From Ascidiella aspersa (taxonomy: Eukaryota), in assembly GCA_963924565.1 (NCBI GenBank), contig OZ004607.1, positions 27,280,001-27,344,000 of the forward strand: a stretch of 64,000 nt of DNA, in the 5' to 3' direction. Numbering within the stretch: position 1 is the stretch's first letter; each line of letters begins with the position of its first letter. Positions 1 through 23,337 of this stretch are shown one piece after another. A program made the position numbers and the translations under genes. The notes beneath the pieces were generated by a model that was given only the letters and a program-made list of their open reading frames with translations, was not told the DNA's origin and ran no database searches.

Positions 1-3000
1 ATCTTGTCATGCAAACGCTACTTGCAACAACACTGAAGGATCATTTACCTGTGAATGTAACGTTGGTTATACCGGCGATGGACAATCGTGTTCTGGTAAG
101 GATTACACTTTTTTATTATTTAAAAAAATGTTGTTGTTGATTTGTACCAAAAGCATTTTAATTGCAAAATTTCTTAATTAGATATCAATGAATGTAGCCT
201 GAGTGGATCTTGTCATGCAAACGCTACTTGCAACAACACTGAAGGATCATTTACCTGTGAATGTAACACTGGTTATACCGGCGATGGACACTCGTGTTCT
301 GGTAAGGATAACTTATTTTTATTGATTTCAAAGCCATTTCCGTAGACTTGTGCAAAAGCATATTTTAAACAAATTTCTTAATTAGATATCAATGAATGTA
401 GCCTGAGTGGATCTTGTCATGCAAACGCTACTTGCAACAACACTGAAGGATCATTTACCTGTGAATGTAACGTTGGTTATACCGGCGATGGACAATCGTG
501 TTCTGGTAAGGATTAGACTTTTTTATTATTTAAAAAAATGTTGTTGTTGATTTGTACCAAAAGCATTTTAATTGCCAAATTTCTTAATTAGATATCAATG
601 AATGTAGCCTGAGTGGATCTTGTCATTCAAACGCTACTTGCAACAACACTGAAGGATCATTTACCTGTGAATGTAACGTTGGTTATACCGGCGATGGACA
701 ATCGTGTTCTGGTAAGGATTAGGATTTTTTATTGATTTTAAAGCTGTTGTTGGTGATTTTTACCAAAAGCATTTTAATTACCAAATTTCTTAATTAGATA
801 TCAATGAATGCATGATCAGTGGATCATGTCATGCAAACGCTACTTGCAACAACACTGAAGGATCATTTTCCTGTGAATGTAACACTGGTTATACCGGCGA
901 TGGACAATCGTGTTCTGGTAAGGATTAGACTTTTTTATTGATTTTAAAGCTGTTGTTGGTGATTTTTACCAAAAGCATTTTAATTACCAAATTTCTTAAT
1001 TAGATATCAATGAATGCATGATCAGTGGATCATGTCATGCAAACGCTACTTGCAACAACACTGAAGGATCATTTTCCTGTGAATGTAACACTGGTTATAC
1101 CGGCGATGGACAATCGTGTTCTGGTAAGGATTAGACTTTTTTATTGTTTTTGAAACTGTTGTTGTTGATTTGTACCAAAAGCATTTTAATTACCAAATTT
1201 CTTAATTAGATATCAATGAATGCATGATCAGTGGATCATGTCATGCAAACGCTACTTGCAACAACACTGAAGGATCCTTTACCTGTGAATGTAACGTTGG
1301 TTATACCGGCGATGGACAATCGTGTTCTGGTAAGGATTAGGCTTTTTTTATTGATTTTAAAACTGTTGTTGTTGATTTATATCAAAAGCATTTTAATTAC
1401 CAAATTTCTTAATTAGATATCAATGAATGCATGATCAGTGGATCATGTCATGCAAACGCTACTTGCAACAACACTGAAGGATCATTTACCTGTGAATGTA
1501 ACGTTGGTTATACCGGCGATGGACAATCGTGTTCTGGTAAGGATTAGGCTTTTTTTATTGATTTTAAAGCTGTTGTTGGTGATTTTTACCAAAAGCATTT
1601 TAATTACCAAATTTCTTAATTAGATATCAATGAATGCATGATCAGTGGATCATGTCATGCAAACGCTACTTGCAACAACACTGAAGGATCATTTACCTGT
1701 GAATGTAACGTTGGTTATACCGGCGATGGACAATCGTGTTCTGGTAAGGATTACACTTTTTTATTATTTAAAAAAATGTTGTTGTTGATTTGTACCAAAA
1801 GCATTTTAATTGCAAAATTTCTTAATTAGATATCAATGAATGTAGCCTGAGTGGATCTTGTCATGCAAACGCTACTTGCAACAACACTGAAGGATCATTT
1901 ACCTGTGAATGTAACACTGGTTATACCGGCGATGGACACTCGTGTTCTGGTAAGGATAACTTATTTTTATTGATTTCAAAGCCATTTCCGTAGACTTGTG
2001 CAAAAGCATATTTTAAACAAATTTCTTAATTAGATATCAATGAATGTAGCCTGAGTGGATCTTGTCATGCAAACGCTACTTGCAACAACACTGAAGGATC
2101 ATTTACCTGTGAATGTAACGTTGGTTATACCGGCGATGGACAATCGTGTTCTGGTAAGGATTAGACTTTTTTATTATTTAAAAAAATGTTGTTGTTGATT
2201 TGTACCAAAAGCATTTTAATTGCCAAATTTCTTAATTAGATATCAATGAATGTAGCCTGAGTGGATCTTGTCATGCAAACGCTACTTGCAACAACACTGA
2301 AGGATCATTTACCTGTGAATGTAACGTTGGTTATACCGGCGATGGACAATCGTGTTCTGGTAAGGATTAGGATTTTTTATTGATTTTAAAGCTGTTGTTG
2401 GTGATTTTTACCAAAAGCATTTTAATTACCAAATTTCTTAATTAGATATCAATGAATGCATGATCAGTGGATCATGTCATGCAAACGCTACTTGCAACAA
2501 CACTGAAGGATCATTTTCCTGTGAATGTAACACTGGTTATACCGGCGATGGACAATCGTGTTCTGGTAAGGATTAGACTTTTTTATTGATTTTAAAGCTG
2601 TTGTTGGTGATTTTTACCAAAAGCATTTTAATTACCAAATTTCTTAATTAGATATCAATGAATGCATGATCAGTGGATCATGTCATGCAAACGCTACTTG
2701 CAACAACACTGAAGGATCATTTTCCTGTGAATGTAACACTGGTTATACCGGCGATGGACAATCGTGTTCTGGTAAGGATTAGACTTTTTTATTGTTTTTG
2801 AAACTGTTGTTGTTGATTTGTACCAAAAGCATTTTAATTACCAAATTTCTTAATTAGATATCAATGAATGCATGATCAGTGGATCATGTCATGCAAACGC
2901 TACTTGCAACAACACTGAAGGATCCTTTACCTGTGAATGTAACGTTGGTTATACCGGCGATGGACAATCGTGTTCTGGTAAGGATTAGGCTTTTTTTATT

Positions 3001-6000
3001 GATTTTAAAACTGTTGTTGTTGATTTATATCAAAAGCATTTTAATTACCAAATTTCTTAATTAGATATCAATGAATGCATGATCAGTGGATCATGTCATG
3101 CAAACGCTACTTGCAACAACACTGAAGGATCATTTACCTGTGAATGTAACGTTGGTTATACCGGCGATGGACAATCGTGTTCTGGTAAGGATTAGGCTTT
3201 TTTTATTGATTTTAAAGCTGTTGTTGGTGATTTTTACCAAAAGCATTTTAATTACCAAATTTCTTAATTAGATATCAATGAATGCATGATCAGTGGATCA
3301 TGTCATGCAAACGCTACTTGCAACAACACTGAAGGATCATTTACCTGTGAATGTAACGTGGGTTATACCGGCGATGGACAATCGTGTTCTGGTAAGGATT
3401 AGGCTTTTTTTATTGATTTTAAAGCTGTTGTTGGTGATTTTTACCAAAAGCATTTCAATTACCAAATTTCTTAATTAGATATCAATGAATGCATGATCAG
3501 TGGATCATGTCATGCAAACGCTACTTGCAACAACACTGAAGGATCATTTACCTGTGAATGTAACACTGGGTATACCGGCGATGGACAATCGTGTTCTGGT
3601 AAGGATTAGACTTTTTTATTATTTTTAAAACTGTTGTTGTTGATTTGTACCAAAAGCATTTCAATTGCCAAATTTCTTAATTAGATATCAATGAATGTAG
3701 CCTGAGTGGATCTTGTCATGCAAACGCTACTTGCAACAACACTGAAGGATCATTTACCTGTGAATGTAACGTTGGTTATACCGGTGATGGACAATCGTGT
3801 TCTGGTAAGGATTTGACTTTTTTATTATTTTTAAAACTGTTGTTGTTGATTTGTACCAAAAGCATTTCAATTGCCAAATTTCTTAATTAGATATCAATGA
3901 ATGCATCCTCAGTGGATCATGTCATGCAAACGCTACTTGCAACAACACTGAAGGATCATTTACCTGTGAATGTAACACTGGTTATACCGGCGATGGACAA
4001 TCGTGTTCTGGTAAGGATTACTTATTTTTATTGATTTCAAAGCCATTGCCGTAAACTTGTGCAAAAGCGTATTTTAAACAAATTTCTTAATTAGATATCA
4101 ATGAATGCATCCTCAGTGGATCATGTCATGCAAACGCTACTTGCAACAACACTGAAGGATCATTTACGTGTGAATGTAACGTTGGTTATACCGGCGATGG
4201 ACAATCGTGTTCTGGTAAGGTTTAGGCCTTTTTATTGATTTTAAAGATGTTGTTGGTGATTTCTACCAAAAGCATTTTAATTACCAAATTTCTTAAATAG
4301 ATATCAATGAATGCATGATCAGTGGATCATGTCATGCAAACGCTACTTGCAACAACACTGAAGGATCATTTACCTGTGAATGTAACGTTGGTTATACCGG
4401 CGATGGACAATCATGTTCTGGTGAGGTTTAGGCTTTTTTATTGATTTTAAAGCTGTTGTTGGTGATTTCTACCAAAAGCATTTTAATTACCAAATTTCTT
4501 AAATAGATATCAATGAATGCATGATCAGTGGATCATGTCATGCAAACGCTACTTGCAACAACACTGAAGGATCATTTACCTGTGAATGTAACACTGGTTA
4601 TACCGGCGATGGACAATCGTGTTCTGGTAAGGATTAGACTTTTTTATTATTTTTAAAATGTAGTTGTTGATTTTTACCAAAAGCATTTTAATTACCAAAT
4701 TTTTTAATTAGATATCAATGAATGCATGATCAGTGGATCATGTCATGCAAACGCTACTTGCAACAACACTGAAGGATCATTTTCCTGTGAATGTAACACT
4801 GGTTATACCGGCGATGGACAATCGTGTTCTGGTAAGGATTATACTTTTTTATTGATTTTAAAGCTGTTGTTGTTGATTTTTACCAAAAGCATTTTAATTA
4901 CCAAATTTTTTAATTAGATATCAATGAATGCATGATCAGTGGATCATGTCATGCAAATGCTACTTGCAACAACACTGAAGGATCATTTACCTGTGAATGT
5001 AACACTGGTTATACCGGCGATGGACAATCGTGTTCTGGTAAGGATTATACTTTTTTATTGATTTTAAAGCTGTTGTTGTTGATTTGTACCAAAGGCATTT
5101 TAATTGCCAAATTTCTTAATTAGATATCAATGAATGTAGCCTGAGTGGATCTTGTCATGCAAACGCTACTTGCAACAACACTGAAGGATCATTTACCTGT
5201 GAATGTAACGTTGGTTATACCGGCGATGGACAATCGTGTTCTGGTAAGGATTAGGTTTTTTTTATTGATTTTAAAGCTGTTGTTGTTGATTTTTACCAAA
5301 AGCATTTTAATTACCAAATTTCTTAATTAGATATCAATGAATGTAGCCTGAGTGGATCTTGTCATGCAAACGCTACTTGCAACAACACTGAAGGATCATT
5401 TACCTGTGAATGTAACGTTGGTTATACCGGTGATGGACAATCGTGTTCTGGTAAGGATTTGACTTTTTTATCATTTTTAAAACTGTTGTTGTTGATTTGT
5501 ACCAAAAGCATTTCAATTGCCAAATTTCTTAATTAGATATCAATGAATGCATCCTCAGTGGATCATGTCATGCAAACGCTACTTGCAACAACACTGAAGG
5601 ATCATTTACCTGTGAATGTAACACTGGTTATACCGGCGATGGACAATCGTGTTCTGGTAAGGATTACTTATTTTTATTGATTTCAAAGCCATTGCCGTAA
5701 ACTTGTGCAAAAGCGTATTTTAAACAAATTTCTTAATTAGATATCAATGAATGCATCCTCAGTGGATCATGTCATGCAAACGCTACTTGCAACAACACTG
5801 AAGGATCATTTACGTGTGAATGTAACGTTGGTTATACCGGCGATGGACAATCGTGTTCTGGTAAGGTTTAGGCTTTTTTATTGATTTTAAAGCTGTTGTT
5901 GGTGATTTCTACCAAAAGCATTTTAATTACCAAATTTCTTAAATAGATATCAATGAATGCATGATCAGTGGATCATGTCATGCAAACGCTACTTGCAACA

Positions 6001-7713
6001 ACACTGAAGGATCATTTACCTGTGAATGTAACGTTGGTTATACCGGCGATGGACAATCATGTTCTGGTAAGGTTTAGGCTTTTTTATTGATTTTAAAGCT
6101 GTTGTTGGTGATTTCTACCAAAAGCATTTTAATTACCAAATTTCTTAAATAGATATCAATGAATGCATGATCAGTGGATCATGTCATGCAAACGCTACTT
6201 GCAACAACACTGAAGGATCATTTACCTGTGAATGTAACGTTGGTTATACCGGCAATGGACAATCGTGTTCTGGTAAGGATTAGACTTTTTTATTGTTTTT
6301 AAAACTGTTGTTGTTGATTTGTGCCAAAAGCATTTTAATTGCCAAATTTCTTAATTAGATATCAATGAATGCATGATCAGTGGATCATGTCATGCAAACG
6401 CTACTTGCAACAACACTGAAGGATCATTTACCTGTGAATGTAACGTTGGTTATACCGGCGATGGACAATCGTGTTCTGGTAAGGATTGGGCTTTTTTATT
6501 GATTTTAAAGCGGTTGTTGTTGATTTTTACCAAAAGCATTTTAATTACCAAATTTCTTAATTAGATATCAATGAATGCATGATCAGTGGATCATGTCATG
6601 CAAACGCTGCTTGCAACAACACTGAAGGATCATTTACCTGTGAATGTAACGTTGGTTATACCGGCGATGGACAATCGTGTTCTGGTAAGGTTTAGGCTTT
6701 TTTATTGATTTTAAAGCTGTTGTTGTTGATTTCTACCAAAAGCATTTTAATTACCAAATTTCTTAAATAGATATCAATGAATGCATGATCAGTGGATCAT
6801 GTCATGCAAACGCTACTTGCAACAACACTGAAGGATCATTTACCTGTGAATGTAACACTGGTTATACCGGCGATGGACAATCGTGTTCTGGTAACGATTA
6901 GACTTTTTTATTGTTTTTGAAACTGTTGTTGTTGATTTGTACCAAAAGCATTTTAATTGCCAAATTTCTTAATCAGATATCAATGAATGTAGCCTGAGTG
7001 GATCTTGTCATGCAAACGCTACTTGCAACAACACTGAAGGATCATTTACCTGTGAATGTACCGTTGGTTATACCGGCGATGGACAATCGTGTTCTGGTAA
7101 GGATTAGGCTTTTTTATTGGTTTTAAAACTGTTGTTGTTGATTTTTACCAAAAGCCTTTTAATTACCAAATTTCTTAATTAGATATCAATGAATGCATGA
7201 TCAGTGGATCATGTCATGCAAACGCTACTTGCAACAACACTGAAGGATCATTTACCTGTGAATGTAACACTGGTTATACCGGCGATGGACAATCGTGTTC
7301 TGGTAAGGATTAGACTTTTTATTGTTTTTAAAACTGTTGTTGTTGATTTGTACCAAAAGCATTTTAATTACCAAATTTCTTAAATAGATATCAATGAATG
7401 TAACCTGAGTGGATCTTGTCATGCAAACGCTACTTGCAACAACACTGAAGGATCATTTGCCTGTGAATGTAACGTTGGTTATACCGGCGATGGACAATCG
7501 TGTTCTGGTAAGGATTAGGCTTTTTTATTGGTTTTAAAACTGTTGTTGTTGATTTTTACCAAAAGCATTTTAATTACCAAATTTCTTAAATAGATATCAA
7601 TGAATGCATGATCAGTGGATCATGTCATGCAAACGCTACTTGCAACAACACTGAAGGATCATTTACCTGTGAATGTAACGCTGGTTATAGAGGCGATGGA
7701 CATTCTTGTTCTG
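1..7713 (+). repeat. Tandem array of 38 ~204-207-bp units, each a 120-bp phase-1/1 calcium-binding EGF exon plus an 84-87-bp intron
   Basis: Exons start at 182, 386, 592, 798, 1004, 1210, 1417, 1624, 1830, 2034, 2240, 2446, 2652, 2858, 3065, 3272, 3479, 3685, 3891, 4095, 4301, 4507, 4712, 4918, 5124, 5331, 5537, 5741, 5947, 6153, 6359, 6565, 6771, 6977, 7183, 7388, 7594. Consensus DINEC(MI/SL/IL)[22 protein letters not shown](V/T)[10 protein letters not shown]. Introns run GTAAG...AATTAG. The array continues beyond the left edge. Confidence 0.97.
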
Positions 7714-10700
7714 GTAACATTTTTCTTTTGAATTTCGTTTGTTTTCATTACAAATGAATTTTTTTAAATACATTTTATTTTCCACGCTTAGTTTTGTGGT
7801 TTAGTCGTTCTTTTTTTGGTTGTATTTAATATTGTTTTCAAATAGATGTTGACGAATGTAGTTTTGAACTGAGTGTATGCAATCTTTCCATATCTTTTTG
7901 TGTTAATCACATCGGAAGTTACAGCTGCCTTTGCTTATCAACTGCTTCGTCTTCAAACTGTTCAAGTTAGTTTTTCAACTTTGTTAATTACTTTTGCTTG
8001 CCTTTTTAATTTCCATGTTTCCTTATTCTATTTTGTATTTAACTTCTTTGTTTCTAGCTGTTCATGGCTGAAAAGAAGTCTGTAACTGCTAATTTTTAAA
8101 AAGTGTGTTTGCGAATTGTCAACCGTTGTTTTTGTGTAAACCTAGTTGGAACGCGTTTCGCCGTTACTCTCGCGAACCGCAGCTACACCGAGCAATTCGC
8201 CAATCTCTCCAATCCTCAGGCTTTCCAACTTGCCAGTACCTTGCAACCAGTGTTAAGTCGTGCCTTTAGAAGCGACGTGCGGATGATCGGCTTTCAAAAC
8301 GGTAGTCTCGTTGCAATGTAAGTGTTTTTGTCCGTTTTTACGGGTTGATAGCTACTCCCTAGTCTTTATCAAGACCCATAGGGCATAGATACGATTTCGT
8401 GGTGTTTTCAGGGTTGTTTAAAGCTATGTTCTAACTATTTAAGATAATTGGTTTCTCGTTTCAACCCTTGATAAAAAAAACAGGCTACTGTATCATGTTT
8501 CCGTCATGTACAAATATTAGATTCAAGGGCCAGTGATTTTTAGGAAGGCGCATGCTGTATTCCTTGGAAATTTGCAACAAAGATTGGCAGCAACTTATCA
8601 CTGTAGACATTTATGTATTGTAGCAGCAATCTGCACAAAAAGAACCCTGCACAGCAGCAGCAGCAGCTTGCTAACTCAAACATTCACTTTTTGTGCAGAT
8701 TCGTTGTGATTCATAACGGCAGCACAACATCGCAATTCCTGATTCAGTCCTTTACTACGTGGAAGTCCGAGAATCCAGCTTTGGCGACGATATTCGATGG
8801 AAAGCCGGTAGAATGTAAGTTTAGCGCAATGTCAATGTACAACGTGCTTTTATTTGTTGTTGCTCCTATTTATGAAATGAGATAACTTTAAAGTATTATG
8901 CCAACCAACGCTACATGAAAATATTTACGGTAAGGTGTTCAAGCAATCGTTTGACGCCACACTGAAAAAAAACAGGAACATAAGTCAACGAATCCATACT
9001 TAAAAGTCTTAGATTGTAAGCTCATTGATGTTACCTATACAAGCTTACTTCGTGAAACTGAAAGCAAATACTGGCTACGTCTGACCTTCGCCGGTCGTGT
9101 TGTAATTGCCACCGCTTTTCTTCTACAGTTTTCCCTAACCCCTGTGCATCCTCACCCTGTGGCAGCGGCGGAACTTGCAGCAAGTTTGGCTTAACGTTTA
9201 AGTGCTCGTGTCGGGACGGATTCTCAGGAGACCGTTGTCAGCTTGGTAAGAAACCGGGACGGATGGGCTGGCGCTTTCGAGTAATTTCACCCTAATTTCG
9301 CGTCTATAGGACACTTGTCCCAAACAAAGTCCTTTCGAGTGTGTTTTTATTGCGCCACAGTTGTACACCTTTATGTTAAAGTATTTCAATACGGTGGTGT
9401 AGGTTGGCAATATTCATGCAAAATACGAAACTGATTTAAGGTTTCGTTGGTGTCGTGACGCAGTTTATTAAGCCAAACCAAAATATACTTAAGCGTAAAA
9501 TCCTACCATCATAAATTAGGCAAAAAAGAAGAAGAAGGTGCAGGGCATCCATCTCATTAAACTTGCTAAATATTTTCTGAAATTCTTGTATTTTGTTGAT
9601 TTTAAAATTGTTATTATTTTTGTGATATCTTAACAGTTGTAAAAAACTTAATTCACTAAAAAACTCGCCTGACCTGCAAAATGTTAAAAAAAATTAAAAA
9701 CAAATAAGAAAATTGGACACCAAGAGACCTATCAGAGGCTTGCGTAAGTTGAACATGAGCTAAAGTCACCATAGCTCGTTAAATACCCGCTTGTTTTGGT
9801 CCCTCGCAGTCGACCACTGCCACTTCAAGACCTGTGCTTCTCAAGCCACTTGCACCAACCTCAATTCTACAGCCGCGTGCACTTGCCGTCCTCTGCATAA
9901 AGGCGACCCCGAAGTGTTGTGCGAACGTAAGTCGTCTCAAGTAAACTTACCGAAAGCGGTGTTTTCAATTTTGAACCGCTTATGGTCTTCGCTTTATATC
10001 CCTGGACCCGTTTTGTGTTTTGTTCGATTTCCCGACAGAATTTCAGTCAAGTTTCCATCTCTTTTTAAGGCTTAACTTTTACGCGAAGTGTTAAAAGACT
10101 GTGCGAAGATCGAGAGAATTGCTTAACAATTTCAACTGTCACATATAAGACTGCAAAAAGTTACTTAGACTTGTTATTCCGTAACAATGTTGAGTTACTA
10201 TTTACAAACAGCATCCGCTGAGCCTTCTTAGCTTTGGCTCTTCTTTAGGCATTGCCCGGGTCGATAAACTACGTAACACAATACTTGGCTTTTGTTCCGC
10301 TACAAGATTAACTAAGCTAATCTTGTGTTATTAATTATATTTTTTTAGCCTACTGCTTAAGCCAGAATGTGTCGACATACTCGTTTGCTGAAACCTGGGT
10401 AGGGCAAGTCGCCTATTCCACACAAAAGTGTCCGCAAGGTAAGAAGGCTTTTTTTATAATAGTGAAAGAAATAGTGTATAATATGACCGAAAGCAAACTA
10501 TTTGTTTCCCTCCTTAGCAAGATAAGTTATACTGAGTAAGTAGATTCTATACTTGTGCGGATACATGTCTTTCATAAGAATACAGTCTTTTAAATGGTAG
10601 CCAGTTTTTGGCTTAATTAGGTAATTTTTCGTCTAAATTGTTGCATATTATAATCCAACTGATGTTGATCAATTTCGTGACACTCATAATGACCTTAACG

Positions 10701-13700
10701 ACAATAAAACGTAATTAAATTTGTTTCGAAATGTCAAGGTCGTTCAAGGGCATCGATCGGATGTGTCGCCGGGCACACGTTCTCTCTAGCGTCCCTGACG
10801 GTGGTTGGATGCAGCAGCACGGTTACCACTTTGACCTCATCCAGTCCTGTTGAAGTAAGTTAAAGTGTCCGTAACGGGTATACTTTCTGCCATTTCTCCA
10901 AGGTCGGTACACCTTAAGATTTGTCTTTGTTTACAAAGGTATTTTTAGAAGTACATTTGCCTGATTTAAGTAATATGTTTATGATGGTCCGATACTTGCT
11001 ATTGTACTCAGATGTTAAGCAACACGATTCCAAAAGACATTACAATGGTCTAATAAATAAAATTGATCAAATTTGTTGGTCGTAATGGTAATGATTTTTT
11101 GCGGGTAATAGGCCAAATTTGCTTTTGTATTAAAAAAAGCCTATTTATCTTTGATTCTGCAATGTAATGTTTAAGTTCTCAGAAATTTACTTTTATAGCT
11201 CTTCATTGATCGCATAGCATCACTGCAACTTGGTAGCGGATACCCCCATATCACCAGTTACCTAATTGTGTTCTAACCTACAACCTCCTTCATTATTATC
11301 AAGATTAAACAAAGCCGAACTATGTACTTCTGATATTTCATTTATACTTTTTATTTTATAAAAACAATGAATTGCTATTGCAGAAAGAGAACGTGACAAG
11401 TGCAGAGGTCACCCAGTTCGCACAGCAACTGCAGCTGGTGACCTCCAGTGGTGGACTGAGCACAGCTGAAATCGACGACGTCATCGCTGCCACGAAAAAC
11501 ATCACCAGCGCGTCACAGAAGGGAAGCTTCGTCGTGAGTATTTTTGTACACTAAACTAAGTATCGGTCTACAATCAAAAATTTTACCTATGTTCCGAACT
11601 TTACGAAGAATTGAAGACTGATACACAGTAAACATGCAAAAAGAAATTAAACGAGTTATATCTTCATTATTTTATTACTTGACATAGTTTCGGACGGTAA
11701 GTTACGCCCTCCTATCGTCGACTGTTTTTCTTACGCGAAGGCTTTTTGAGTGGTTGCTAAATTAATATGCCGTCCCATGTCAGGTTAACTTTATCAAGGG
11801 TTTATCGCTAGCGAAAAAGAGATTTATCCAAAAAAGACGTTTTGTTATATCCTTCAATTTTGGCGTACATTCGTGTTTACAACCGCATTTTTGCGATGTT
11901 CGTGTTTACGACCTTGTGTATTCCATAAAAAGTTTGATTTAGCACCTTAGGTTTAGGAGTCGGTTCCAACCAACAAAGTTCGTATTTTGGCATCCTTAAA
12001 CTCGACCCACATCTCTTTTTTCGGGAACGACAAACGCTCGACCTAAAAAAGGGCAGAAAAAATCTCCAACGCTCGGCCCTGCTAGAATTCTGCGTTTTGA
12101 GACTTGTTTTTCTTTGCCTTTTGAAAAGGTGGTGCCTGAGACGTGGCAGAACCTCATGCTGGCCAGCAGCCACGCCGCTGACTCGCTGTCGCAGCAGGAT
12201 ACAAGCGAAGACCGGGAAAAGAGCAAGAAGGAGCTGCTTCAGGCTATCGAGGACCTCAGCGGAGTCGTGCAGCTTTCCGCCAACGACAGCGATGTTACGG
12301 TCGAGAGCGAGATCTTTGTCGGTTTGGTGAGTCGCCGTCACTTAAAGATAAGGTTCTCTTCTTGGTCGTTTCGAGCTAAGTCACGTTGTCAAAGTACGGC
12401 CACTACAATTGGACCTTATATGTGGCCCACATGGGTCATTAATAGAATTTGCGATATCCGTTACTTACGTTATCATAAGAACTGAATGGTACAAAATCGA
12501 AAAATTAATGAAATTAAAACTTCTACAGGTAATTCAAATTTAATAAAGGTAAGTTATGTACAGTTGCAATAAAAAGCTGCATATTTAAATTGCGACACAT
12601 TACAAATTACAAAATTTGAGAGTGATTTCAAATTTTTGCTTAAACGCTAAGTGTCTTAATACAATTGTTTATATACCATTATTAAGTAAAATCAATCAAT
12701 AAATATAGTCGTAAATCGCCTGTTGTTTTAATCACGTTTAATGGAAAATAACAACAAATCACGTTCAGAACCGCTAGCAAGGATGCCGCAATCTATTAAA
12801 CGTTTCTGTAGCTTGCCAAATTTCGAAAGGAGGATGGACAGTCGAGTTATGTGACTTACTTGCGGAAGTTTAACACAATGTTAAACAACATGCCATACAC
12901 GCGTTCTGTCACCTAAAAAACGGTTAACATGACAGCTTACCAAGAATCCTAAATGCGTGCGTGCTAGTTTCACGTGTATTTTGTTCATGAACTTTAAAAA
13001 AATGAAAAGGAAGTAGGTAAGGTTGTGACTCGATTCTTCCCCTTCGACCAAGAAGAGGTCGGGAATTCCTGAACAAAAGTCAGTAGTGGTCTGAGCCCAG
13101 TCCTCGCCAACCAGACAACCTGTCTCCACTAGGGAGCAGTTGCCGCCACGGAGGTAGGGCCCTGTAAACTGCATAAGGCAAAAGGAAAACGTTTTAACCT
13201 TTTGTTTGTGGTGGTAGTATTGGTAAGTAGTAATAAGTAGTCGTGAAGTAGTAAATGTTTAGTTATTTTAATATTTAGTTATACTGCTGAAAAAAAAACG
13301 GGTTTCCTAGGCAAAAAGTCAGGATTCTACTGAACCAGGCTAGACTCCACAAGAAGTAAACTTACCTTACAAAGCTACCAATTAACCCCCTCGCACCGAT
13401 GAAGCTCAAGAGCCAAACAGCGGAAAGTAACCTCTCGAACAATCGCGCAGGTCTCGTCTCTTTCTTCGAACGCCGGCAGAAGGCGAAGACGCTCGACCTC
13501 AGGCAGTCACTACGAGGTACAGAGGCACGACAACGGCAGCACGAGCACCGCTATCAACTTCGACCTCCCCGACAGTGTCGTGCAGAGCGCCATCAGCCAG
13601 AACTCGACCCAGCTCACCGTTCTCTTCTTCAAGACGGACACCCTCTTTCCAAGCGGCGAGAATGCAACGCAGGTGAGTGATTTTTTTTTCATTAGATTTC

Positions 13701-16700
13701 CTAAATCCAATCAAACACAAAATATTTAGGTCTTGATTTTTGAAAGTTTTATATCTGGAAAATGTAAAAAAGATTGGGTAAATAAATTTTTAAAACACCT
13801 TTCCGTTAGTTACCGCGTCGAAAAGATCATTTTCGTACGATTTATTATACTGTCATTTGTTTTGTTACATATGTATTATTTTTTTTTTTTCTGAAAGACG
13901 ATTGATATAATTTACAAATTTGATTAACTTTTTTTGTTTAATTAAACCTTTATTTGACAGCTTTTCTAATTGAGACACTTAGAATGTCAAACAACATCGT
14001 AACATACATGTAAAAGTTGTTCAGTAACGAAAAAGGGTCTCCTGCACTCCAACGGCAACGGGCCGGGCAGAGACAAACTAGTTATGTTTTCGTTTTTAAA
14101 TCTTGGACGTTTTACAGATCTTGCTTCTGAGCTTCGGAAAGCAGGTGGTGCTCACCAATCTGCAGCAGCCAATCAGAATTAACCAGAACAACCAGCCGAA
14201 TCGCTACGGCGAGCTGCCAGACCCTGATAACTCTAGATTGGTACGATATCTCACGAGCTAATCTGTGTTTATTAAGCCCCCTTTGGTATTGATAATGGGG
14301 TCTGGTTGACTGCGTAATGACAAACGGAGTAGCTTTTTAATTTTTGAAACTATTAAAGACATTTAAATGTCAAATATTACGCGATTTGGTTTAAAAAAAA
14401 TGTTCGCAGCTCGTAATTTGTACTTTTTAAAGCGGTTAAATATATTAGGATTTTCTAAAGGGTTTCCGAAACTAAAACTGAAGAGGCACTATTCAATCTG
14501 GTAGCCCATATAAAGGCATTAGTAAGATGCAACGCGCTCAGCCTATATTAAGATGCTATAATTATCCTCTTAAATGTAAAACCCTTTCTCTTCAAACCGA
14601 ATTAGTTTTTATATGTCGCTTTTCATCCCTGCTTTTAGGTGGACCGCACCTTCCTGGAGTGCAAGTACTGGGACGAAACAACCAGTGGTTGGGCGACCGA
14701 GGGCTGTTGCTTGAACCAGACCGACCCGACGAAACCCGTGTGCCAATGCTCGCATTTCACAAACTTTGCCCTCATCGTGGTACGCTGCGACGAACCTACC
14801 TACTTTACTTTATAACTTGGTGCTGTTCTTCCAATTGAGCAGTTCCGCAGAAGTCGGCTTTCTGCCCCGCAACCCTTTTTTATTAAGATTATTTATCACC
14901 TGATTTCGTGGTTTTTGTCACCAAATAATTTAACCGCAGCGAAATGATTTGTTTTTTAGTATAAAATGGAAAAAATCAATCACAGTATTTATTAGGAACG
15001 GCAAGCAAATAGCTGAACGTATTTGAATTTCATATTTTATTGAAACTCAGTACCTTTCGCGCATTTTAAATGGCTCAATGTCTATTAGAACTATTTCGTT
15101 AATTGTTTAATGATAAATCTTACCCGAAATTACTTCCTCTCTCTGTCCATAATAATCTATGGTTCAACCTATGGTTCAACTTAGTTTGGTAAGAATTGCT
15201 TAGAATTAAGCCCAATCAGTTCTTCTGAATTGATAGCTGTTTTGTAATTAAACCAACATCATACTTAATGAAATAAGCTATTGCTGCTAGGCATAATGTA
15301 TAATCGAGTGTTGCTCATCCAGCAGTATATAATAAAATGCTGGATGAGCAACATTCGGTTATCATACTAAATATCACTCAGTTTTATGTGTATGCAACCA
15401 AGAATATGGCATAGCTTTTACATACCTCCTTAATCCGCTTCTTGTGAACTTTCGAAATAGAAACCGAATTCATGTCTTTTCAGGCGAAGGACTCGATTCC
15501 CATCGACGTGGTGCTGGAAACTGTAAGTGACGTGGGATGCATCCTTTCTATCATCAGTCTTGTCATCGTGCTCATCCTACAGCTCTCGTCCAAGTGAGTT
15601 CCTTTGACCATCGATTAATTTACCCAAAGTCTAAAACTGAGGCTCATCGAAAAAGAGTTGCGCAGTTGCGCGTTTGATGAAAGAATAATAACTCTGATGT
15701 ACAGCATTTTAATAAAAAATGGTTAAGATAGTATATCCGCGAAAAATATGAATGGCTGAAGTAAATAATTAAAAATCACTTTGTCGTAATAAACGAGTTT
15801 CATGCTTACTTAGTTGCGCGAATATTGCGCGTTTGATGAAAGATAACTCTGATGCACAGCATTTCAATAAAAAAAATAGTTAAGACTGTATATCCGCAAA
15901 AGTTATCAACTGCTTAAATGAATGATTAAAAATTACTTTCTCGTATAATAAATGATTGTCATGCTTACTAAGGCCAAAGTTTACTGACCCTGAATAAAGT
16001 GTTTAAGGAAGGCCTTTACACTGAATTAAATTTGGAGTAGGCCGTAAAAATGTTCTGTAATTAAACTATAGATTTCCATCCCTCAAAATTATTGCTTAAA
16101 GTTTCAACCGCCCATTTGATATCAATCCAATGCCAGTTGTTTTAGCAAAAATGTTTATCAAACTCAAACCGGTGTTTGAATTTTCCTTCTACAAACACTT
16201 TCGTTCAAATAAAACCATACTTTCTAATAAAAAGTCGCAAAATAAAACATGTCTAAGAATTGTAGTATATGTGTAATACTTGTACCCACAACAAAATCTT
16301 GCCCTCCAACAGAACACATAATGCCGAGTTCTAAAATTTTAATAAAAGCTTTAGAAGGACAACGCTTCGAACGAAATCTTGGAAAGTTTTACACTTTTTA
16401 GACTGATTTGTGTTCTCAAGCCTTTGTCTAAGAATTGTTTCCCTAAAAACATCAAAAAACGCAAGGTAACGGAAGTAAACGTATCCCCCCTATGTTGCCA
16501 GCGAGCGTCGCCGTCTGCGCTCTACGCGCGTATTCGTGAACGTTTGCGCCAACCTGCTCGTCGCCTATCTTATCTTCGTGATCGGCGTTGGTAAAACCGA
16601 AAACGACGCAAGCTGCGTGGCCATCACCGCCATTCTCCAGTACTTCTTCCTCACCACCTGGTTCTGGATGGTCGCGTACGGCTACGACCTTTACCTTAGC

Positions 16701-19700
16701 CTCATTAAGGTAGGTGTCTCGTTTATGTATGATGTTATTGTAACAAAAATGGCATAAAAATGGGTGTTATAAAATCTGGTTTTCTTTTAGTTGTAACTTC
16801 ATTTATTTTTGAAACTGTGACACTTGGGTTGCCAAACAATTTTATTACCAAACACCGTTTTCTCTCAAAAACACGATACAAATTAAATTAAGATATTTTG
16901 AATTATCTGTTTAGTTAAAGTTAAGTCATTTTCATCCAACAGCTTGTCAAGTCCCAACGAAGTTATAAATTGCCTTTAGTGCCAGTCCGCAATATTTAAG
17001 TCCACGTGATTGAAACAAACAATAAATGTTTACGTAATACAATGGTTACTCATTAGATTAAAAGCATTTTTGACATAATCAAGAATAAAAGTTATTTTTG
17101 TCTACAATTTTTTTAAAAAACAAACAAATTTTATCAAAACTTCGTTTACCATCTCAAATTTTGTTTTACATTAAAATACGAAGGACATTGTATGTTTTTT
17201 AAATTCAAAAGTACAGGTCACAGTAAAACGTCAAAAGTCGAATCACATAAAAATATAGTAAGTAGACGAATTAACTATACATACTAGAATAACTACAATA
17301 AATGTGTAACGCGACAAGACGACACATGCTCCACCTCCACGTATAGGTTTTCCGCGACGACGGCAAGATTTTCATGCGTAAACTCTACATCATCTCGTAC
17401 GGAATCCCGCTGCTCATCGTGATCGTGACAATCGCGTCCGCACTCGGATACGACGCAAATAAACTCGTGCCCATCACCTGCGATGGAAGTAAGTTAAAGC
17501 TCGAATTAAATAGTTTTGTTTATCCGATTTGACATGTTGGCGCATTACACGTTAGAGCCGTGTTTCTTAACCTTGTTTCGCGGCTGCCCAAATATTAAGC
17601 GGAAAATCAGTAAAACTGTAGTCACTTGCATTTGAAAATCTGTTGTTTAGATTGATTCTGTTTTGCCAGAAACTTACTTTCCAATACCGCTTTTTTTAAA
17701 TGCAACTTACGGCACTCCCAATAAGTTTCTTAAAAAAGAACTATAACAGGGTCAATATATTTTAACTTGGCGATTCAGCCAAAAATTTGACACCGGAGAG
17801 AAGCCTTCACAAATTGTAGAAAGCAAAAAGTATAGGTTAACGCTTTCATTTTTCCGCTTGCAGACGACCTGCTGCGTCACTCGTCGTACCGCGCCCTGAA
17901 CATGTGCTGGCTGCATGGATACGCCCTCTACTTTGGCTTCCTACTACCGGTCGGTGTCTGTCTCCTTCTCAACTGCTTCTTCTTCGCCATGGTGCTGCGC
18001 AAGGTCGTCTGGAGGCAGACCGAGGTCAGAGTTAGCTGTAGGCCTTTTAACACCCGTGCATTCTTGTTTACAACAGCCAGTTTCGTGATTTGCGCATAAA
18101 AGTGCTTTGACGAAAGCGTGTCCCAATTAATCGATTACTATTTTTTACCCTTTAACCCAGTCCTTAGGCAACATAGGGCCGCCTAGCAATTCGTAAACCA
18201 GGGCCGGTTTGTACACGTTTAGTTGTATCCTAAACTCTCGTTTCGGAAACGTATCTAGTCATGGCCAGACCAATTCGATTTTTAGCCTGTTTAAAATACT
18301 AAAACGACTTGTGACCTTCTTTATATTCGTCTTAAATTGCACATTTTTGCACAACTCCAAACATAATAACAAGTTCGTTAGCTAATTTGTTTTATACCGT
18401 CAGAGTATGACGTCATATTGCGTGTATTTTAGATCCCATTTTTGACCCGGCCCGCCACAACATTTTAAGTTTCTCATGCTGCCCGCGGTTAAAAATAATT
18501 GCCCACCCCTGATTTAAGCTAAAAACAGACACGCCTTAAAAATATTTATTGTCTTGAAAAATTTGGTCTGGCGACTTTGGAATAAGAACAATTTTGCTGT
18601 TTCCCTTTCTAAATAAAAAAAAACTTTGTTATCGGCATAGGGTCCGTATTGCAGTTGTTCGAAAAGATGTGTTCTACAGAAACCCTACTTTACGGCCTGT
18701 TGGATACCAAGCGCTACACGAACTGTCAAATTTTATTAATACTTAGGCGAACTGTAAATATAACCAAAAAATACATAAAACAATAAAAATCGGCCAACGA
18801 AATTGGGCAGAAACGTGAATTGCTAAAGTCTAAAAATGCTGTCCAAGCTTAGCCAAAACCCGACTCCCATATTTTGCTTTCAGTTCCCTAACCACAACAA
18901 CAGGGGAAAAAAGATGTACCAACTTTTTTCAAATACTAAAACTTAATTGGGACAACTAAGCTTTCTGCAACCATTTTCGCGACAGGACCTATAGGGATCG
19001 TTTGAAAAAAAATCACTGGAAGATTAAAATGTTCCAATAAAAAACATGATAATTGTTAAAAAAATGTGTAAATGCCGACTGTAACTAAATATTATGTGCC
19101 AGCAGAAAACGTAATAAGATAATAATAAAACGTTTACGAAATATAAAAACAATACCACAAAAACAAAACGATAAAATAATGCGTGTAACAGATACACACC
19201 AACCTGCGTTACATCGTCTAACATGCTCCGTTATACAATCTAACGCAGCGGTTCCCAAACTTTTCTAAGAAATTTGCCTAGTGGACCCGTTGGAAATGTT
19301 TTGATATTTCGCGGCCCTAAAAAATTCAAGGGTCAGTTGACCCATGTTTCATGAAGTATACTAGCGCAGTCACGATTCTTTCTAATGTAACAACTTTCTA
19401 ACTAACGCGAACGATTCGCTGAATGCAGGTAGTACAGCATAACAGATGCTCTGTGTTGTCACAACACGCCATACGATCTAATAATAAAGCATAACTAAAG
19501 ACAACAATAATGACAGATATTAATGTTTAAAACATAGGTAGACTAATGTTTCAAAACATTCGCTAAAGCCTAATGTTGAAAAACTTAAAAGATGAATTCT
19601 CCTCGCGGACCCTGTGAAACGGCTGTACGGACCCCAGTTTGGAAACCGCTGAACGTCTAACGTTTTTAGCTTTTTTACCAAACTCTTTCACTTTTCAATT

Positions 19701-21115
19701 GCCGCAGATTATCTCAAACGCCTCGCAGAAGTCGGCTAAACAGAAACTTGAAATATCGGTGACCCTCTTCAGCACAATGGGCCTGTCCTGGATCTTCGGC
19801 TATCTGCTGCTCGCCTCCAACGACCCTTACTACGTGCGCGTCATGAGCTGGTTCTTTGCCATTTTTGCCGTAACTCAGGTTCGTGCAGAACGATCTTTTT
19901 ATTGAACGTTTTTATATTTTACACTCGTCGCTTAACCCCAATATGCCACAACAGTGGTTGTTAGCCGCCAGTCCGCTATACGTTTCGTCGGAAGGGCAAA
20001 GCGTTTTCTTTATTTTGAAGGTTGGCAAATTATATTTTTTGCCATCTTCAGCTGCGTAAATGCGAAAATAATTTTTACTTGCTATATTGTAGTGTGCTAG
20101 TCCTGTTTCACAGAAAAGCGCCGTGGGTAGTTCATCAAAATTCGACTTTAGAATGACACAATGAAAGATCTACATACATGTGATCTAGCCCCTCTGACGC
20201 TGTTTTTGACCAACGATTACGGCTTCCGTATCATACAGTACACCGAAAAGCCATCGCAGACTAATCGAATCAATGATGCAAGCCAGGCAGGCTAGAAAAC
20301 AACTAGCCTGCAGTGAGGTTCGAAATCACGACCTCCGGTCATACCGGGACCCTCGAAACATACTGAAACATAGGCTTAAGATGGGAACGAGTCGAGACCA
20401 GACCACACGCCAATGCTTTCACAGGATTCACAGAATGTAGCGTTGTCGTATGATTGTGCTTTTATAGACGCAGTGAATTTATTTTAAAATTTTATTTGTT
20501 TATATATTCGCCATACTGTTAGATTCGAGAATACTAAAATATCGTTAAATCATTCTGATGTAAACTTGTTGCGCGCTGTAATAATATAGATATTATTCGT
20601 CATTGCAGCTTAATTGTTTTTATCAAACTACTTGGATATAGTGCGAACTGTTACCAATGTTAGCTTAAAAAATTTAACACGATGTTTTCCCTAAGGTGAT
20701 AATTGGGTACTCTCGTTGTACTCTCATCTTTCTAATGCCCGGGTTTCGTCGCATAGTTATCGGTTAGTTTAGGTTTAAATCTTCCACAATGGCCATATCG
20801 TACATCACGCGCCAATTCGATTTCACCCATCCTACACCGTAGTATATTTTACATTGTAATCTGCCCAACCACCTCCCTTGCTTTGTGGCTAGGATAACCG
20901 AACTGTTTGATTTCACACCGCAGGGAATTCTCATCCTGGTAATGACTTCGGTGCGCCACCGTGCGGTAAGGGAAAAGATCAGCAGCAACATCCGCCGCGT
21001 CCGCTCAAACATCTTCAGTCGCTCCGACGCCTACGACATGTCTTCCTCTGATCCACAGCATGTCCAAGTCCAGGAAGCTACCAGTCCCAGTAGTCCAAGG
21101 TCCTTTATCGAATAG
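1..21115 (+). CDS. Adhesion GPCR (ADGRG-like 7TM), 5'-incomplete: >=39 EGF-CA + SEA + 2 EGF + HRM + GAIN/GPS + 7TM, >=~2400 aa
   Basis: Phase-consistent GT-AG splicing of 38 array exons (1-95 partial, then 120 bp each from 182 to 7594-7713), then 7846-7965, 8146-8317, 8699-8814, 9129-9245, 9810-9926, 10349-10438, 10739-10854, 11384-11533, 12129-12326, 13451-13672, 14118-14240, 14639-14779, 15484-15593, 16502-16709, 17347-17488, 17864-18024, 19708-19878, 20924-21115 (TAG). GPS motif [16 protein letters not shown]...[13 protein letters not shown] is followed by seven hydrophobic segments with family-B2 motifs ([36 protein letters not shown]). Confidence 0.93.
7846..7965 (+). CDS. Diverged terminal EGF-CA exon of the aGPCR
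   Basis: AG|ATGTTGACGAATGT...TGTTCAA|GTTAG, 120 bp, phase 1/1; [40 protein letters not shown]. Confidence 0.88.
8146..8814 (+). CDS. SEA-like domain exons of the aGPCR (8146-8317, 8699-8814)
   Basis: [32 protein letters not shown]...[19 protein letters not shown] matches the SEA pattern, including the FxxGS(V/L)V motif. Confidence 0.75.
9129..9926 (+). CDS. Two non-repetitive EGF exons of the aGPCR (9129-9245, 9810-9926)
   Basis: [35 protein letters not shown] and [38 protein letters not shown]; six-Cys spacing, phase 1/1. Confidence 0.9.
10349..10854 (+). CDS. Hormone-receptor-motif (HRM)-like exons of the aGPCR (10349-10438, 10739-10854)
   Basis: [38 protein letters not shown]...VVGC; four-Cys HRM-like pattern directly before GAIN. 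Confidence 0.65.
11384..14779 (+). CDS. GAIN domain exons including the GPS (14639-14779)
   Basis: Helical subdomain A ([12 protein letters not shown]...[12 protein letters not shown]), then [18 protein letters not shown] and the GPS ending H-F|T-N-F-A-L-I-V. All junctions are phase 0. Confidence 0.9.
15300..15362 (+). other. Intronic 25-bp stem hairpin (pre-miRNA-sized)
   Basis: ATAATCGAGTGTTGCTCATCCAGCA - 13-nt loop - TGCTGGATGAGCAACATTCGGTTAT; fully paired on the + strand with two G:U pairs. Confidence 0.6.
15484..21115 (+). CDS. 7TM and cytoplasmic-tail exons of the aGPCR
   Basis: Exons 15484-15593, 16502-16709, 17347-17488, 17864-18024, 19708-19878, 20924-21115 encode TM1-TM7 and a Ser/Thr-rich tail. 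Confidence 0.92.
15657..15969. repeat. Degenerate ~155-bp direct tandem duplication in an aGPCR intron
   Basis: GTTGCGC...TTGCGCGTTTGATGAAAGA...TCATGCTTACT at ~15657-15810 and ~15813-15969. Confidence 0.8.
18920..19060 (+). repeat. ~140-bp dispersed repeat, copy 1 (aGPCR intron)
   Basis: Near-identical to 22596-22735 (CAACTTTTT...AATTGGGACAACTAAGCTTTCTGCAAC...AAAAAACATGATAAT). Confidence 0.85.
19246..19651. mobile_element. hAT/Charlie-like MITE
   Basis: Terminal inverted repeats CAGCGGTTCCCAAACT / AGTTTGGAAACCGCTG, with subterminal GGACCC motifs. Confidence 0.8.
20150..20415 (-). mobile_element. Possible tRNA-derived SINE relic
   Basis: On the minus strand: A-box-like TGGCGTGTGGTC (~20412), T-arm/B-box-like GAGGTCGTGATTTCGAACCTC (~20335-20315), then AAGCCGTAATCGTTGGTC. 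Boundaries are approximate. Confidence 0.35.
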
Positions 21116-22893: not shown

Positions 22894-23337
22894 ATGGAGT
22901 CGCAGGAACATTTTACGCCAGAGCAAAGGAAGCTACAGTGGTGCGAGTACGTGCGGAGGGAGAGGCGCATGAGTAACAAGACCTACGAAGCGCTGGAGAC
23001 GCCGCACGGCAGCTGGCTTGCGCCTGATAAAATGAAGCAGGAAATCACCTACTTCAACAACAACAAAAAGCACCCCAAGTACTCCGAGTACGAGCGACTG
23101 TTTCATCTGAACCACCACTACGAGAAAAAGCTGCACAGAGACGACAGGGCCAATAGAATCGGCCTCGATGTTCACAACGAAGAAAAAAACAAAGCCGTTC
23201 CAATCCTGTCCTCGTCTGAATATGGTTCCCGTCCGCCGCTGGAACAAACTACCCGGGCCCATGTTATCATCGAAAGCGTGAACAAAGGTTTTTACAGGTC
23301 CAGGGGAACGAACATTCCGAGCAGCTTGGATGGCTAA
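22894..23337 (+). CDS. CFAP90: Cilia/flagella-associated protein 90 (C5orf49 family), single coding exon, 147 aa
   Basis: YERLFHLNHHYEKKLHRDDRANRIGLDVHNEEKNKAVPILSSSEYGSR...FYR matches the recalled C5orf49 core ([24 protein letters not shown]...VLTSSVYGKR...DFYR). Good ATG context AAAATGG. Confidence 0.85.
   Translation: MESQEHFTPEQRKLQWCEYVRRERRMSNKTYEALETPHGSWLAPDKMKQEITYFNNNKKHPKYSEYERLFHLNHHYEKKLHRDDRANRIGLDVHNEEKNKAVPILSSSEYGSRPPLEQTTRAHVIIESVNKGFYRSRGTNIPSSLDG

Follow-up and report, generated by a model that had tools for sequence, protein, structure and literature searches.

Does a very long tandem array of exons for calcium-binding EGF (cbEGF) modules belong to the same gene as the adhesion G-protein-coupled receptor (GPCR) whose exons follow it, and how large a receptor would that gene encode? 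This question is raised by a stretch of 64,000 nucleotides (nt) from the genome of the tunicate Ascidiella aspersa (contig OZ004607.1, here C1, positions 27280001-27344000), which we refer to as the window. Positions without a contig name are window positions, with negative numbers for the sequence to its left; C1 was inspected over 140 kb upstream of the window. We find that array and receptor probably form one gene of ~82 kb, which encodes a giant adhesion GPCR carrying the whole cbEGF array.

The array was detected by Tandem Repeats Finder as a repeat with a period of 206 bp, 37.5 copies and 93% matches at 1-7717. Each unit consists of a 120-nt exon, bounded by an AG acceptor and a GT donor and in phase 1 at both ends, and an intron of 82-87 nt. 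The acceptor is of the TTAATTAG type and the donor reads GTAAGG. The exon encodes 40 amino acids (aa) that start with D-I-N-E-C, contain six cysteines and end with C-S. The window holds only the final 7.7 kb of the array, which starts 52.4 kb upstream at -52406 (C1:27227594) and reaches to 7713, giving 293 units and 60,120 bp in total. The initial annotation of the window had proposed a homogenised array of at least 39 cbEGF modules; the array is indeed of this kind, and is about eight times larger than the part inside the window. Every one of the 293 exons is exactly 120 nt long, with six cysteines, no stop codon and AG..GT splice sites, and all start with D-I-N-E-C except one, which has D-I-I-E-C. 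A single array exon matches Pfam EGF_3 (4.6e-14) and EGF_CA (3.2e-10). Besides the six cysteines, the modules show the other hallmarks of tandem fibrillin-type cbEGF domains: they begin with D-x-[DN]-E-C, follow the hydroxylation consensus C-x-[DN]-x(4)-[FY]-x-C and are joined by a one-residue linker, with C6-S-D leading into the next unit. Most units share one reading of the hydroxylation consensus, and some have K, S, I or A at single positions. Each unit also carries two N-glycosylation sequons.

Exons and introns of the array have evolved very differently. Intron length changes in 165 of 292 units, exon length in 0 of 293, and nucleotide diversity amounts to 0.115 in the introns versus 0.042 in the exons (0.038, 0.028 and 0.060 for the three codon positions). 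This combination of exon conservation and intron variation is far beyond chance. It indicates that homogenisation acts on exon and intron together, and that the exons are additionally under purifying selection. Most of the exon variation is found at a few dimorphic residues, namely M-I/S-L at positions 6-7, E/K at 21, T/S at 25 and V/T at 30. We found no global higher-order repeat in the array. Regional block repeats were seen with a lag of 8 units in the window part and of 14 units in the first 100 units, suggesting growth by multi-unit unequal exchange; the same exchange of multi-unit blocks would also homogenise the array.

Downstream of the array, 18 further exons could be assembled from open segments and splice sites, and upstream of it three more were placed (Table 1). 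The resulting gene model comprises 314 GT..AG exons on the plus strand (C1:27218693-27301115), with one open frame of 38,118 nt, or 12,705 aa, and a single terminal stop. The model was searched exon by exon, and the joined chain was checked for frame and stop codons by script. It contains 1,803 cysteines, 607 N-x-S/T sequons and ~297 EGF-like modules, in the order signal peptide, two EGF-like modules, 293 cbEGFs, a divergent cbEGF, a SEA-like region, two EGFs, a GPR128_N-like domain, GAIN/GPS and the seven-transmembrane (7TM) region. The intact spliced reading frame of at least ~2400 aa expected from the initial annotation thus exists as an open frame, at a far greater size.

In the receptor core, the GPS exon, which is directly followed by the exon for the first transmembrane segment (TM1), reads C-x-C-S-H-F/T and then N-F-A-L-I-V. 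The putative cleavage site has His at -2 and Thr at +1, with Phe instead of the usual Leu at position -1. In the PDB this exon matches the GPS of ADGRD1, L3, G3 and G6, and the Stachel-like TNFALIV directly before TM1, which had been noticed at the outset, is confirmed. The exons from TM1 to TM7 provide seven hydrophobic segments, and they align in the same order with tunicate receptors, to which they are 38-61% identical. With the TM2-3 exon as query, 805 library proteins were found at E<=0.001, and its PDB matches are adhesion GPCRs only; the gene thus combines a class B2 7tm_2 domain with a GPS. The TM6-7 exon has no PDB match at E<=1.

Between the array and the GPS, the first SEA-like exon gave a Pfam SEA (PF01390) hit at E 0.07 when queried as a single exon (13.7 bits with a cut-off of 26.4, profile positions 7-43 of 106). 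It is unique in the genome and collinear with residues 756-820 of a receptor from Clavelina lepadiformis (P0005, see below), and its terminal G-S-L-V-A resembles a SEA self-cleavage site. It had no PDB match, and BLASTP returned nothing against the SEA protein of Rhopilema or the SEA-like exon of the paralogue described below. What is left of the SEA domain of the initial annotation is a weak match to the first of two exons. Its HRM label is not confirmed: Pfam HRM (PF02793) has no match at E<=1 on 10351-10437 or 10741-10854, and what was found on 10351-10437 is GPR128_N (23.9 bits, below the cut-off of 27.2), a domain also present in P0005. The ~290 aa that separate the GPR128_N-like domain from TM1 are of the right size for a GAIN domain.

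A second locus in the same genome shows the same layout. The copy most similar to the TM2-3 exon lies at C5:27680675-27680872 (53% identity). Some 12 kb upstream, in the same orientation, we found one open exon of 3,427 aa that encodes ~87 cbEGFs in 117-nt units without any introns. This array exon is followed by EGF exons, a SEA-like exon ending in G-S-V-I-A, further EGFs, GPR128_GAIN_subdomA (2.7e-4), GPS (1.1e-14) and 7tm_2. The order of these elements means that the EGF-array receptor layout recurs at C5. The paralogous locus covers C5:27658717-27668997 and continues to C5:27685000. Just upstream of its array, at C5:27640000-27652000, lies a ~2060-bp tandem unit in at least 7 copies, each with an EGF exon and a 64-aa open segment. 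Overall, the TM2-3 exon matches at least 49 genome loci, among them two tandem clusters of adhesion-GPCR paralogues, one with six copies that are 45-50% identical to this exon (C1:35329529-35444525) and one with six equally scoring copies at 36% (C5:2128011-2205424). The A. aspersa assembly was the only eukaryotic genome covered by these genome searches.

The nearest public proteins also come from tunicates, namely Ciona, Clavelina lepadiformis and Styela clava. When a representative library was searched with the TM2-3 exon, the best 150 proteins did not exceed 58% identity or a length of 3204 aa; the present gene is therefore absent from that library. The Clavelina protein CAK8694486.1 (P0005) is collinear with our model from the SEA-like exon to TM7, has EGF_CA just before this part and contains GPR128_N, GPS and 7tm_2; its stretch matching the SEA-like exon is not called SEA by Pfam itself. 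Ciona UPI000180B17E (P0152) combines 5 EGF_CA with GPS and 7tm_2, and Styela XP_039253275.2 (P0026, 'ADGRE1-like') 12 EGF_3 with 7tm_2. These receptors have the closest 7TM regions (46-58% identity over TM2-3) and, like the present gene, EGF modules N-terminal of GPS/7tm_2. However, they hold 1 to ~12 EGFs in 1000-2400 aa, compared to ~297 in 12,705 aa, and have no homogenised array of exons and introns. In Ciona, 24 adhesion receptors without clear vertebrate orthologues have been described (Kamesh et al. 2008, PMC2396169), and the EGF receptors of Styela, Ciona and Clavelina fall among the 'unclassified Ciona Adhesion' receptors of that study. Another Styela protein, the 'fibrillin-1-like' P0200, was considered as an orthologue of a stand-alone array and dropped, because its ends are not made of EGFs and its cbEGFs resemble the array in a generic way only.

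Transcription was examined with a single raw-read RNA run labelled as the same species, of which ~6% of the reads were sampled and mapped to 7560-13559; none of the indexed sequencing runs on record as RNA contains the locus. All of the 133 mapped reads indicate plus-strand RNA. In 70 reads, 7712 is joined to 7593, that is, the end of an array exon is spliced precisely to the start of an array exon. At 7690-7691, each of the 88 reads shows the bases of the common units and none those of the last unit, for which 0.3 reads would be expected with 293 units. Further downstream, junctions were found from 8317 to 8699 (4 reads), from 9926 to 10349 (5 reads) and from 10434 to 10735 (4 reads), the last of which fits equally well with a cut 4 bases on, from 10438 to 10739. 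A simulation showed that 34% of fully spliced array reads pass the 95% filter against a single unit, and the estimated RNA depth of the array is ~1x per unit versus ~1.3-2x on the downstream exons. As a rough estimate, this is compatible with the inclusion of most units. The array is real, held open by selection, transcribed and spliced exon to exon, and transcription of the downstream exons has the same orientation.

RNA coverage over the downstream exons was patchy: those from the SEA-like to the GPR128_N-like exons were covered, as was the intron 9927-10348 (~1x), while coverage was close to zero on 7846-7965 and zero on 11384-11533 and 12129-12326. Possible reasons are chance in the sampling, skipped exons, miscalled exons, or a form of the transcript with its end near 10854.

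We infer a single transcript that runs from the array into the receptor. The introns that lead from the last array exon to the divergent cbEGF exon and on to the SEA-like exon measure only 132 and 180 nt, and all junctions are in phase 1. Ahead of the SEA-like exon, its frame is interrupted by a stop at 8097-8099, and no in-frame ATG precedes its coding sequence; the receptor part thus lacks its own start and signal peptide. The C5 paralogue and the tunicate relatives point in the same direction. Several observations weigh against one gene of this size and structure. Neither the junction from 7713 to 7846 nor that from 7965 to 8146 was listed, for which at least 3 reads were needed; in a ~6% sample, a missing junction of this kind is no evidence against its existence. 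The divergent cbEGF exon between them had ~12 mapped RNA bases, and two predicted GAIN subdomain A exons had no RNA reads. Splicing from a unit end to a unit start looks the same in a read whether the two units are neighbours or others have been skipped, and does not reveal how many array exons a mature mRNA keeps. The first two exons are predictions located 7.5 kb upstream of the third, the boundaries at 12102/12129 and 13421/13451 are predictions as well, the SEA match is weak and Pfam GAIN has no match on the four predicted GAIN exons. Finally, the putative cleavage at H-F/T, rod shape and function of the receptor are drawn from what is known of fibrillin-type cbEGF pairs and of adhesion GPCRs.

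The gaps in the RNA evidence could mean that the locus holds two transcription units, one for a giant secreted cbEGF protein in the manner of fibrillin or Dumpy, with its end at the array's end or shortly beyond, and one for a separate adhesion GPCR of ordinary size that starts near the SEA-like exon. The absence of reads joining the array to 8146, the nearly uncovered exon 7846-7965 and the weaker donor of the final array exon, GTAACA, would fit with this. So would the consequences of reading through: past the usual GTAAGGATTAG donor the frame stops within 4 codons (S-G-K-D), past that of the last exon after ~14 codons. However, a separate receptor would have to do without a start codon and signal peptide, with the in-frame stop at 8097-8099 just ahead of it, and no AATAAA occurs within 7714-7845. 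The two tiny introns and the uniform phase 1, the same order of elements at C5 and the relatives that hold EGFs and 7TM in one protein all argue against a split, and we consider it unlikely. It is also conceivable that array and receptor belong to one gene in which the array serves mainly as a reservoir of interchangeable phase-1 cassettes, with mRNAs that keep some of them and encode receptors of variable length or composition, and no protein of 12,705 aa. Any subset of the symmetric phase-1/1 exons would remain in frame, the units vary chiefly at a few dimorphic residues, and the junction reads are blind to the difference between adjacent and skipped units. Yet the depth of ~1x per unit against 1.3-2x downstream fits the inclusion of most units, introns of 86 nt together with strong GTAAGG donors are what constitutive exons typically have, and the ~87 cbEGFs within a single exon of the paralogue indicate that a protein can accommodate a very long run of these modules. 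Such cassette use on a large scale therefore seems rather improbable.

One might also suspect the length of the array itself to be an assembly artefact, for example an over-expanded repeat, since units of 206 bp with 90-96% identity are hard to assemble. The DNA run X1 speaks clearly against this. Its contigs with array words have depths of 8,526 and 12,278, versus 60.6 for a flanking single-copy contig; for the second of them the ratio is 203x, and the same 31-mers occur on average 216 times in the assembled array. X1 is possibly the sample behind the assembly, so its depth is a check of the assembly and does not represent a second individual. The read depth supports the assembled copy number, the array contains region-specific variants and local block repeats, and 162 kb of assembled sequence include neither gaps nor N. 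An artefact is accordingly very hard to believe, and we return to the reading of one gene with the whole array, whose exons are listed in Table 1.

Table 1. Exons of the predicted receptor gene and neighbouring genes (window positions; negative numbers lie upstream of the window)
Feature	Position	Strand	Evidence and remarks
Predicted ATG exon, signal-peptide-like start	-61307	+	phase-1 fit
Predicted EGF-like exon	-60820..-60731	+	phase-1 fit
EGF exon	-53219..-53106	+	phase-1 fit
Last 38 units of the array	1..7713	+	37 full exons at 182-7713, partial exon at 1-95
Divergent cbEGF exon, D-V-D-E-C start, six Cys, phase 1/1, donor GTTAGT	7846..7965	+	Pfam EGF_CA 2.5e-7 (7848-7964)
SEA-like region, exon 1	8146..8317	+	ends G-S-L-V-A; entry phase 1; no in-frame ATG before or at start
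SEA-like region, exon 2	8699..8814	+	RNA junction with 8317, GT..AG ends; no Pfam match alone
EGF exon without Ca-binding consensus	9129..9245	+	Pfam EGF 4.7e-6 (9131-9244); splice sites
EGF exon	9810..9926	+	Pfam EGF_3 2.6e-5 (9812-9925); RNA junction with 10349
GPR128_N-like domain, exon 1	10349..10438	+	Pfam GPR128_N 4.7e-5; RNA junctions on both sides
GPR128_N-like domain, exon 2	10739..10854	+	RNA junction with 10438
Predicted GAIN subdomain A exon, helical	11384..11533	+	open frame, AG/GTGAGT sites, phase; no Pfam match, no RNA reads
Predicted GAIN exon	12129..12326	+	acceptor alternatively 12102; no Pfam match, no RNA reads
Predicted GAIN subdomain B exon	13421..13672	+	acceptor uncertain, 13421 or 13451
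Predicted GAIN subdomain B exon	14118..14240	+	frame, splice sites
GPS, putative cleavage site H-F/T, tethered-agonist start TNFALIV	14639..14779	+	Pfam GPS 1.9e-13; collinear with tunicate receptors
TM1 exon	15484..15593	+	tblastn with P0005, 51% identity; hydrophobic stretch
TM2-TM3 exon	16502..16709	+	Pfam 7tm_2 5.9e-10 (16503-16709); best PDB match ADGRL3 2.7e-11
TM4 exon	17347..17488	+	tblastn with P0005, E 3.6e-6; weak 7tm_2 match
TM5 exon	17864..18030	+	Pfam 7tm_2 2.5e-4 (17866-18030); 61% identity to P0005
TM6 and first half of TM7	19708..19878	+	53% identity to P0005, E 3e-14
Rest of TM7, cytoplasmic tail, stop at 21113-21115	20924..21115	+	P0005 alignment
CFAP90 (cilia and flagella associated protein 90) homologue, single exon	22894..23337	+	Pfam CFAP90 2.8e-27; directly downstream of the receptor gene
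Ets-domain transcription factor gene	30956..32962	-	Ets domain over two exons, Pfam 1.1e-22 and 2.2e-4

Two further observations concern the DNA reads. One of the receptor introns contains a high-copy repeat at 12960-13360, with a k-mer depth of ~900-5000, whereas single-copy sequence has 60-90; the contigs of both DNA runs are interrupted at this repeat. In the second of these runs, X2, the summed depth of array words from 7560-7759 relative to single copy is ~2.6 times that of X1, several contigs being summed, and there are many single-base differences between X2 and the window. A difference in copy number between individuals is possible.

The vertebrate subfamily to which the receptor is closest depends on the part that is compared. 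In the PDB, the TM2-3 exon is most similar to ADGRL3/L2, followed by ADGRL4 (8.4e-9) and ADGRE1 (1.9e-8), both of the EGF-TM7 group, and, further down, ADGRG2 (1.8e-5). Using the whole 7TM regions of tunicate proteins as proxies, ADGRG2 comes first, with 114 bits versus 99.5 bits for ADGRL3 in the case of P0001, and with 116 bits versus 109 for ADGRL3 and 105 for ADGRG6 in the case of P0005. The GPR128_N match and the GPR128 GAIN match of the paralogue lean towards ADGRG7, and the NCBI names of the tunicate relatives vary between E1-like, E5-like, G2-like and G7-like. Because these signals conflict, we file the receptor in no vertebrate subfamily. The ADGRG-like 7TM region of the initial annotation is favoured, narrowly, by the tunicate proxies and not by the TM2-3 exon; judging from these similarities, with ties between ADGRG2/G6 and ADGRL3, the 7TM region does not clearly have an ADGRG identity.

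ADGRG6 contains SEA, a hormone-receptor-type domain, GAIN and 7TM in that order. The present gene resembles ADGRG6 and ADGRG7 through its GPR128_N match, the GPR128_GAIN_subdomA of its paralogue and the best PDB matches of the tunicate proxies to ADGRG2/G6. However, it has no CUB or PTX domain, the matches are below the gathering scores and TM2-3 is nearer to ADGRL3, and we do not claim orthology. The largest known GPCR is ADGRV1 (VLGR1), with 6,306 aa and 35 Calx-beta domains. It is likewise an adhesion GPCR with a huge, repetitive, Ca-binding ectodomain that forms a fibrous link, although its repeats are heterogeneous Calx-beta domains instead of cbEGFs, and it is a vertebrate gene of about half the size. 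Long tandem runs of EGF or cbEGF modules that make extended, load-bearing filaments are known from the fibrillins and from Drosophila Dumpy, which has 308 EGF modules and forms a membrane-anchored fibre of ~0.8 um. The C6-x-D-x-N-E-C1 linker and the Asx-hydroxylation consensus of the present gene are those of fibrillin. In contrast to our model, fibrillins and Dumpy end in matrix or in ZP/TM anchors, not in GAIN-7TM.

Proteins with a similar domain order were also found outside the bilaterians, by a word-index search with the array exon of the paralogue that covered proteins of up to ~5250 aa. According to Pfam, the 'fibrillin-1-like isoform X5' of Rhopilema esculentum (2558 aa) contains 2 CUB domains, at least 31 EGF_CA, SEA, EGF and 7tm_2, the EukProt protein gene7256 (3047 aa) 33 EGF_CA, SEA, GAIN and 7tm_2, and the 'fibrillin-2-like' of Sycon ciliatum (4247 aa) only EGFs and 7tm_2. 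In the first two, a long cbEGF run, SEA, EGF, GAIN and 7tm_2 follow each other in the order predicted for the present gene. As a group, the non-bilaterian EGF-array receptors differ from it by CUB at the front, far fewer EGFs and a 7TM region with no or only weak tblastn similarity, and the likeness may be ancient or convergent. The combination of domains, which the initial annotation had not recognised, is therefore not without precedent: by domain prediction it is already present in public annotations from jellyfish, sponge and tunicates (Rhopilema, EukProt, Sycon, Styela and Ciona proteins; 5 to ~33 scored EGFs), and the present gene is an extreme variant of it. What is new here is the scale, with ~297 modules and 12,705 aa, the homogenised array of exons and introns, and the pair of paralogues with and without introns. 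Our literature search found no paper describing such a receptor.

How might a receptor of this kind work? Tandem cbEGFs would form a Ca-stiffened and heavily glycosylated filament. The initial annotation had envisaged a fibrillin-like rod on the order of 100 nm; the one-residue C6-x-D-I-N-E-C1 linker makes a rod a reasonable assumption, and at ~2.7-3 nm per module the 293 units would extend to ~0.8 um instead. After cleavage at H-F/T, this filament would be the extracellular fragment that GAIN keeps on the 7TM part. A pull on it would expose the TNFALIV tethered agonist and lead to G-protein signalling, and the SEA-like module with its G-S-L-V-A might act as a second force-labile joint in series. 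In its most far-reaching form, this proposal holds that the whole array is a single Ca-stiffened filament of about a micrometre with ~600 N-glycan sites, that it tethers cells to distant matrix such as the tunic or links sensory processes, that strain is read through the SEA-like and GAIN joints, and that its length varies between individuals by unequal exchange. It would then be by far the largest GPCR and a natural mechanosensor of tunable length. We offer this complete scenario tentatively and would sooner expect parts of it to fail than all of it to hold.

If the model is translated as one chain, its product would be about twice the size of ADGRV1. It would join a filament of Dumpy or fibrillin scale directly to GAIN-7TM, and thus be an extreme natural test of the view that the ectodomains of adhesion GPCRs act as force sensors. 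The locus is also a clean case of exon amplification in progress, with homogenisation in blocks and selection on the exons only. Annotation pipelines are likely to split or shorten such arrays, and the nearest public tunicate proteins have at most ~12 EGFs. The EGF counts and the sizes of receptors in this tunicate clade may therefore be underestimated.

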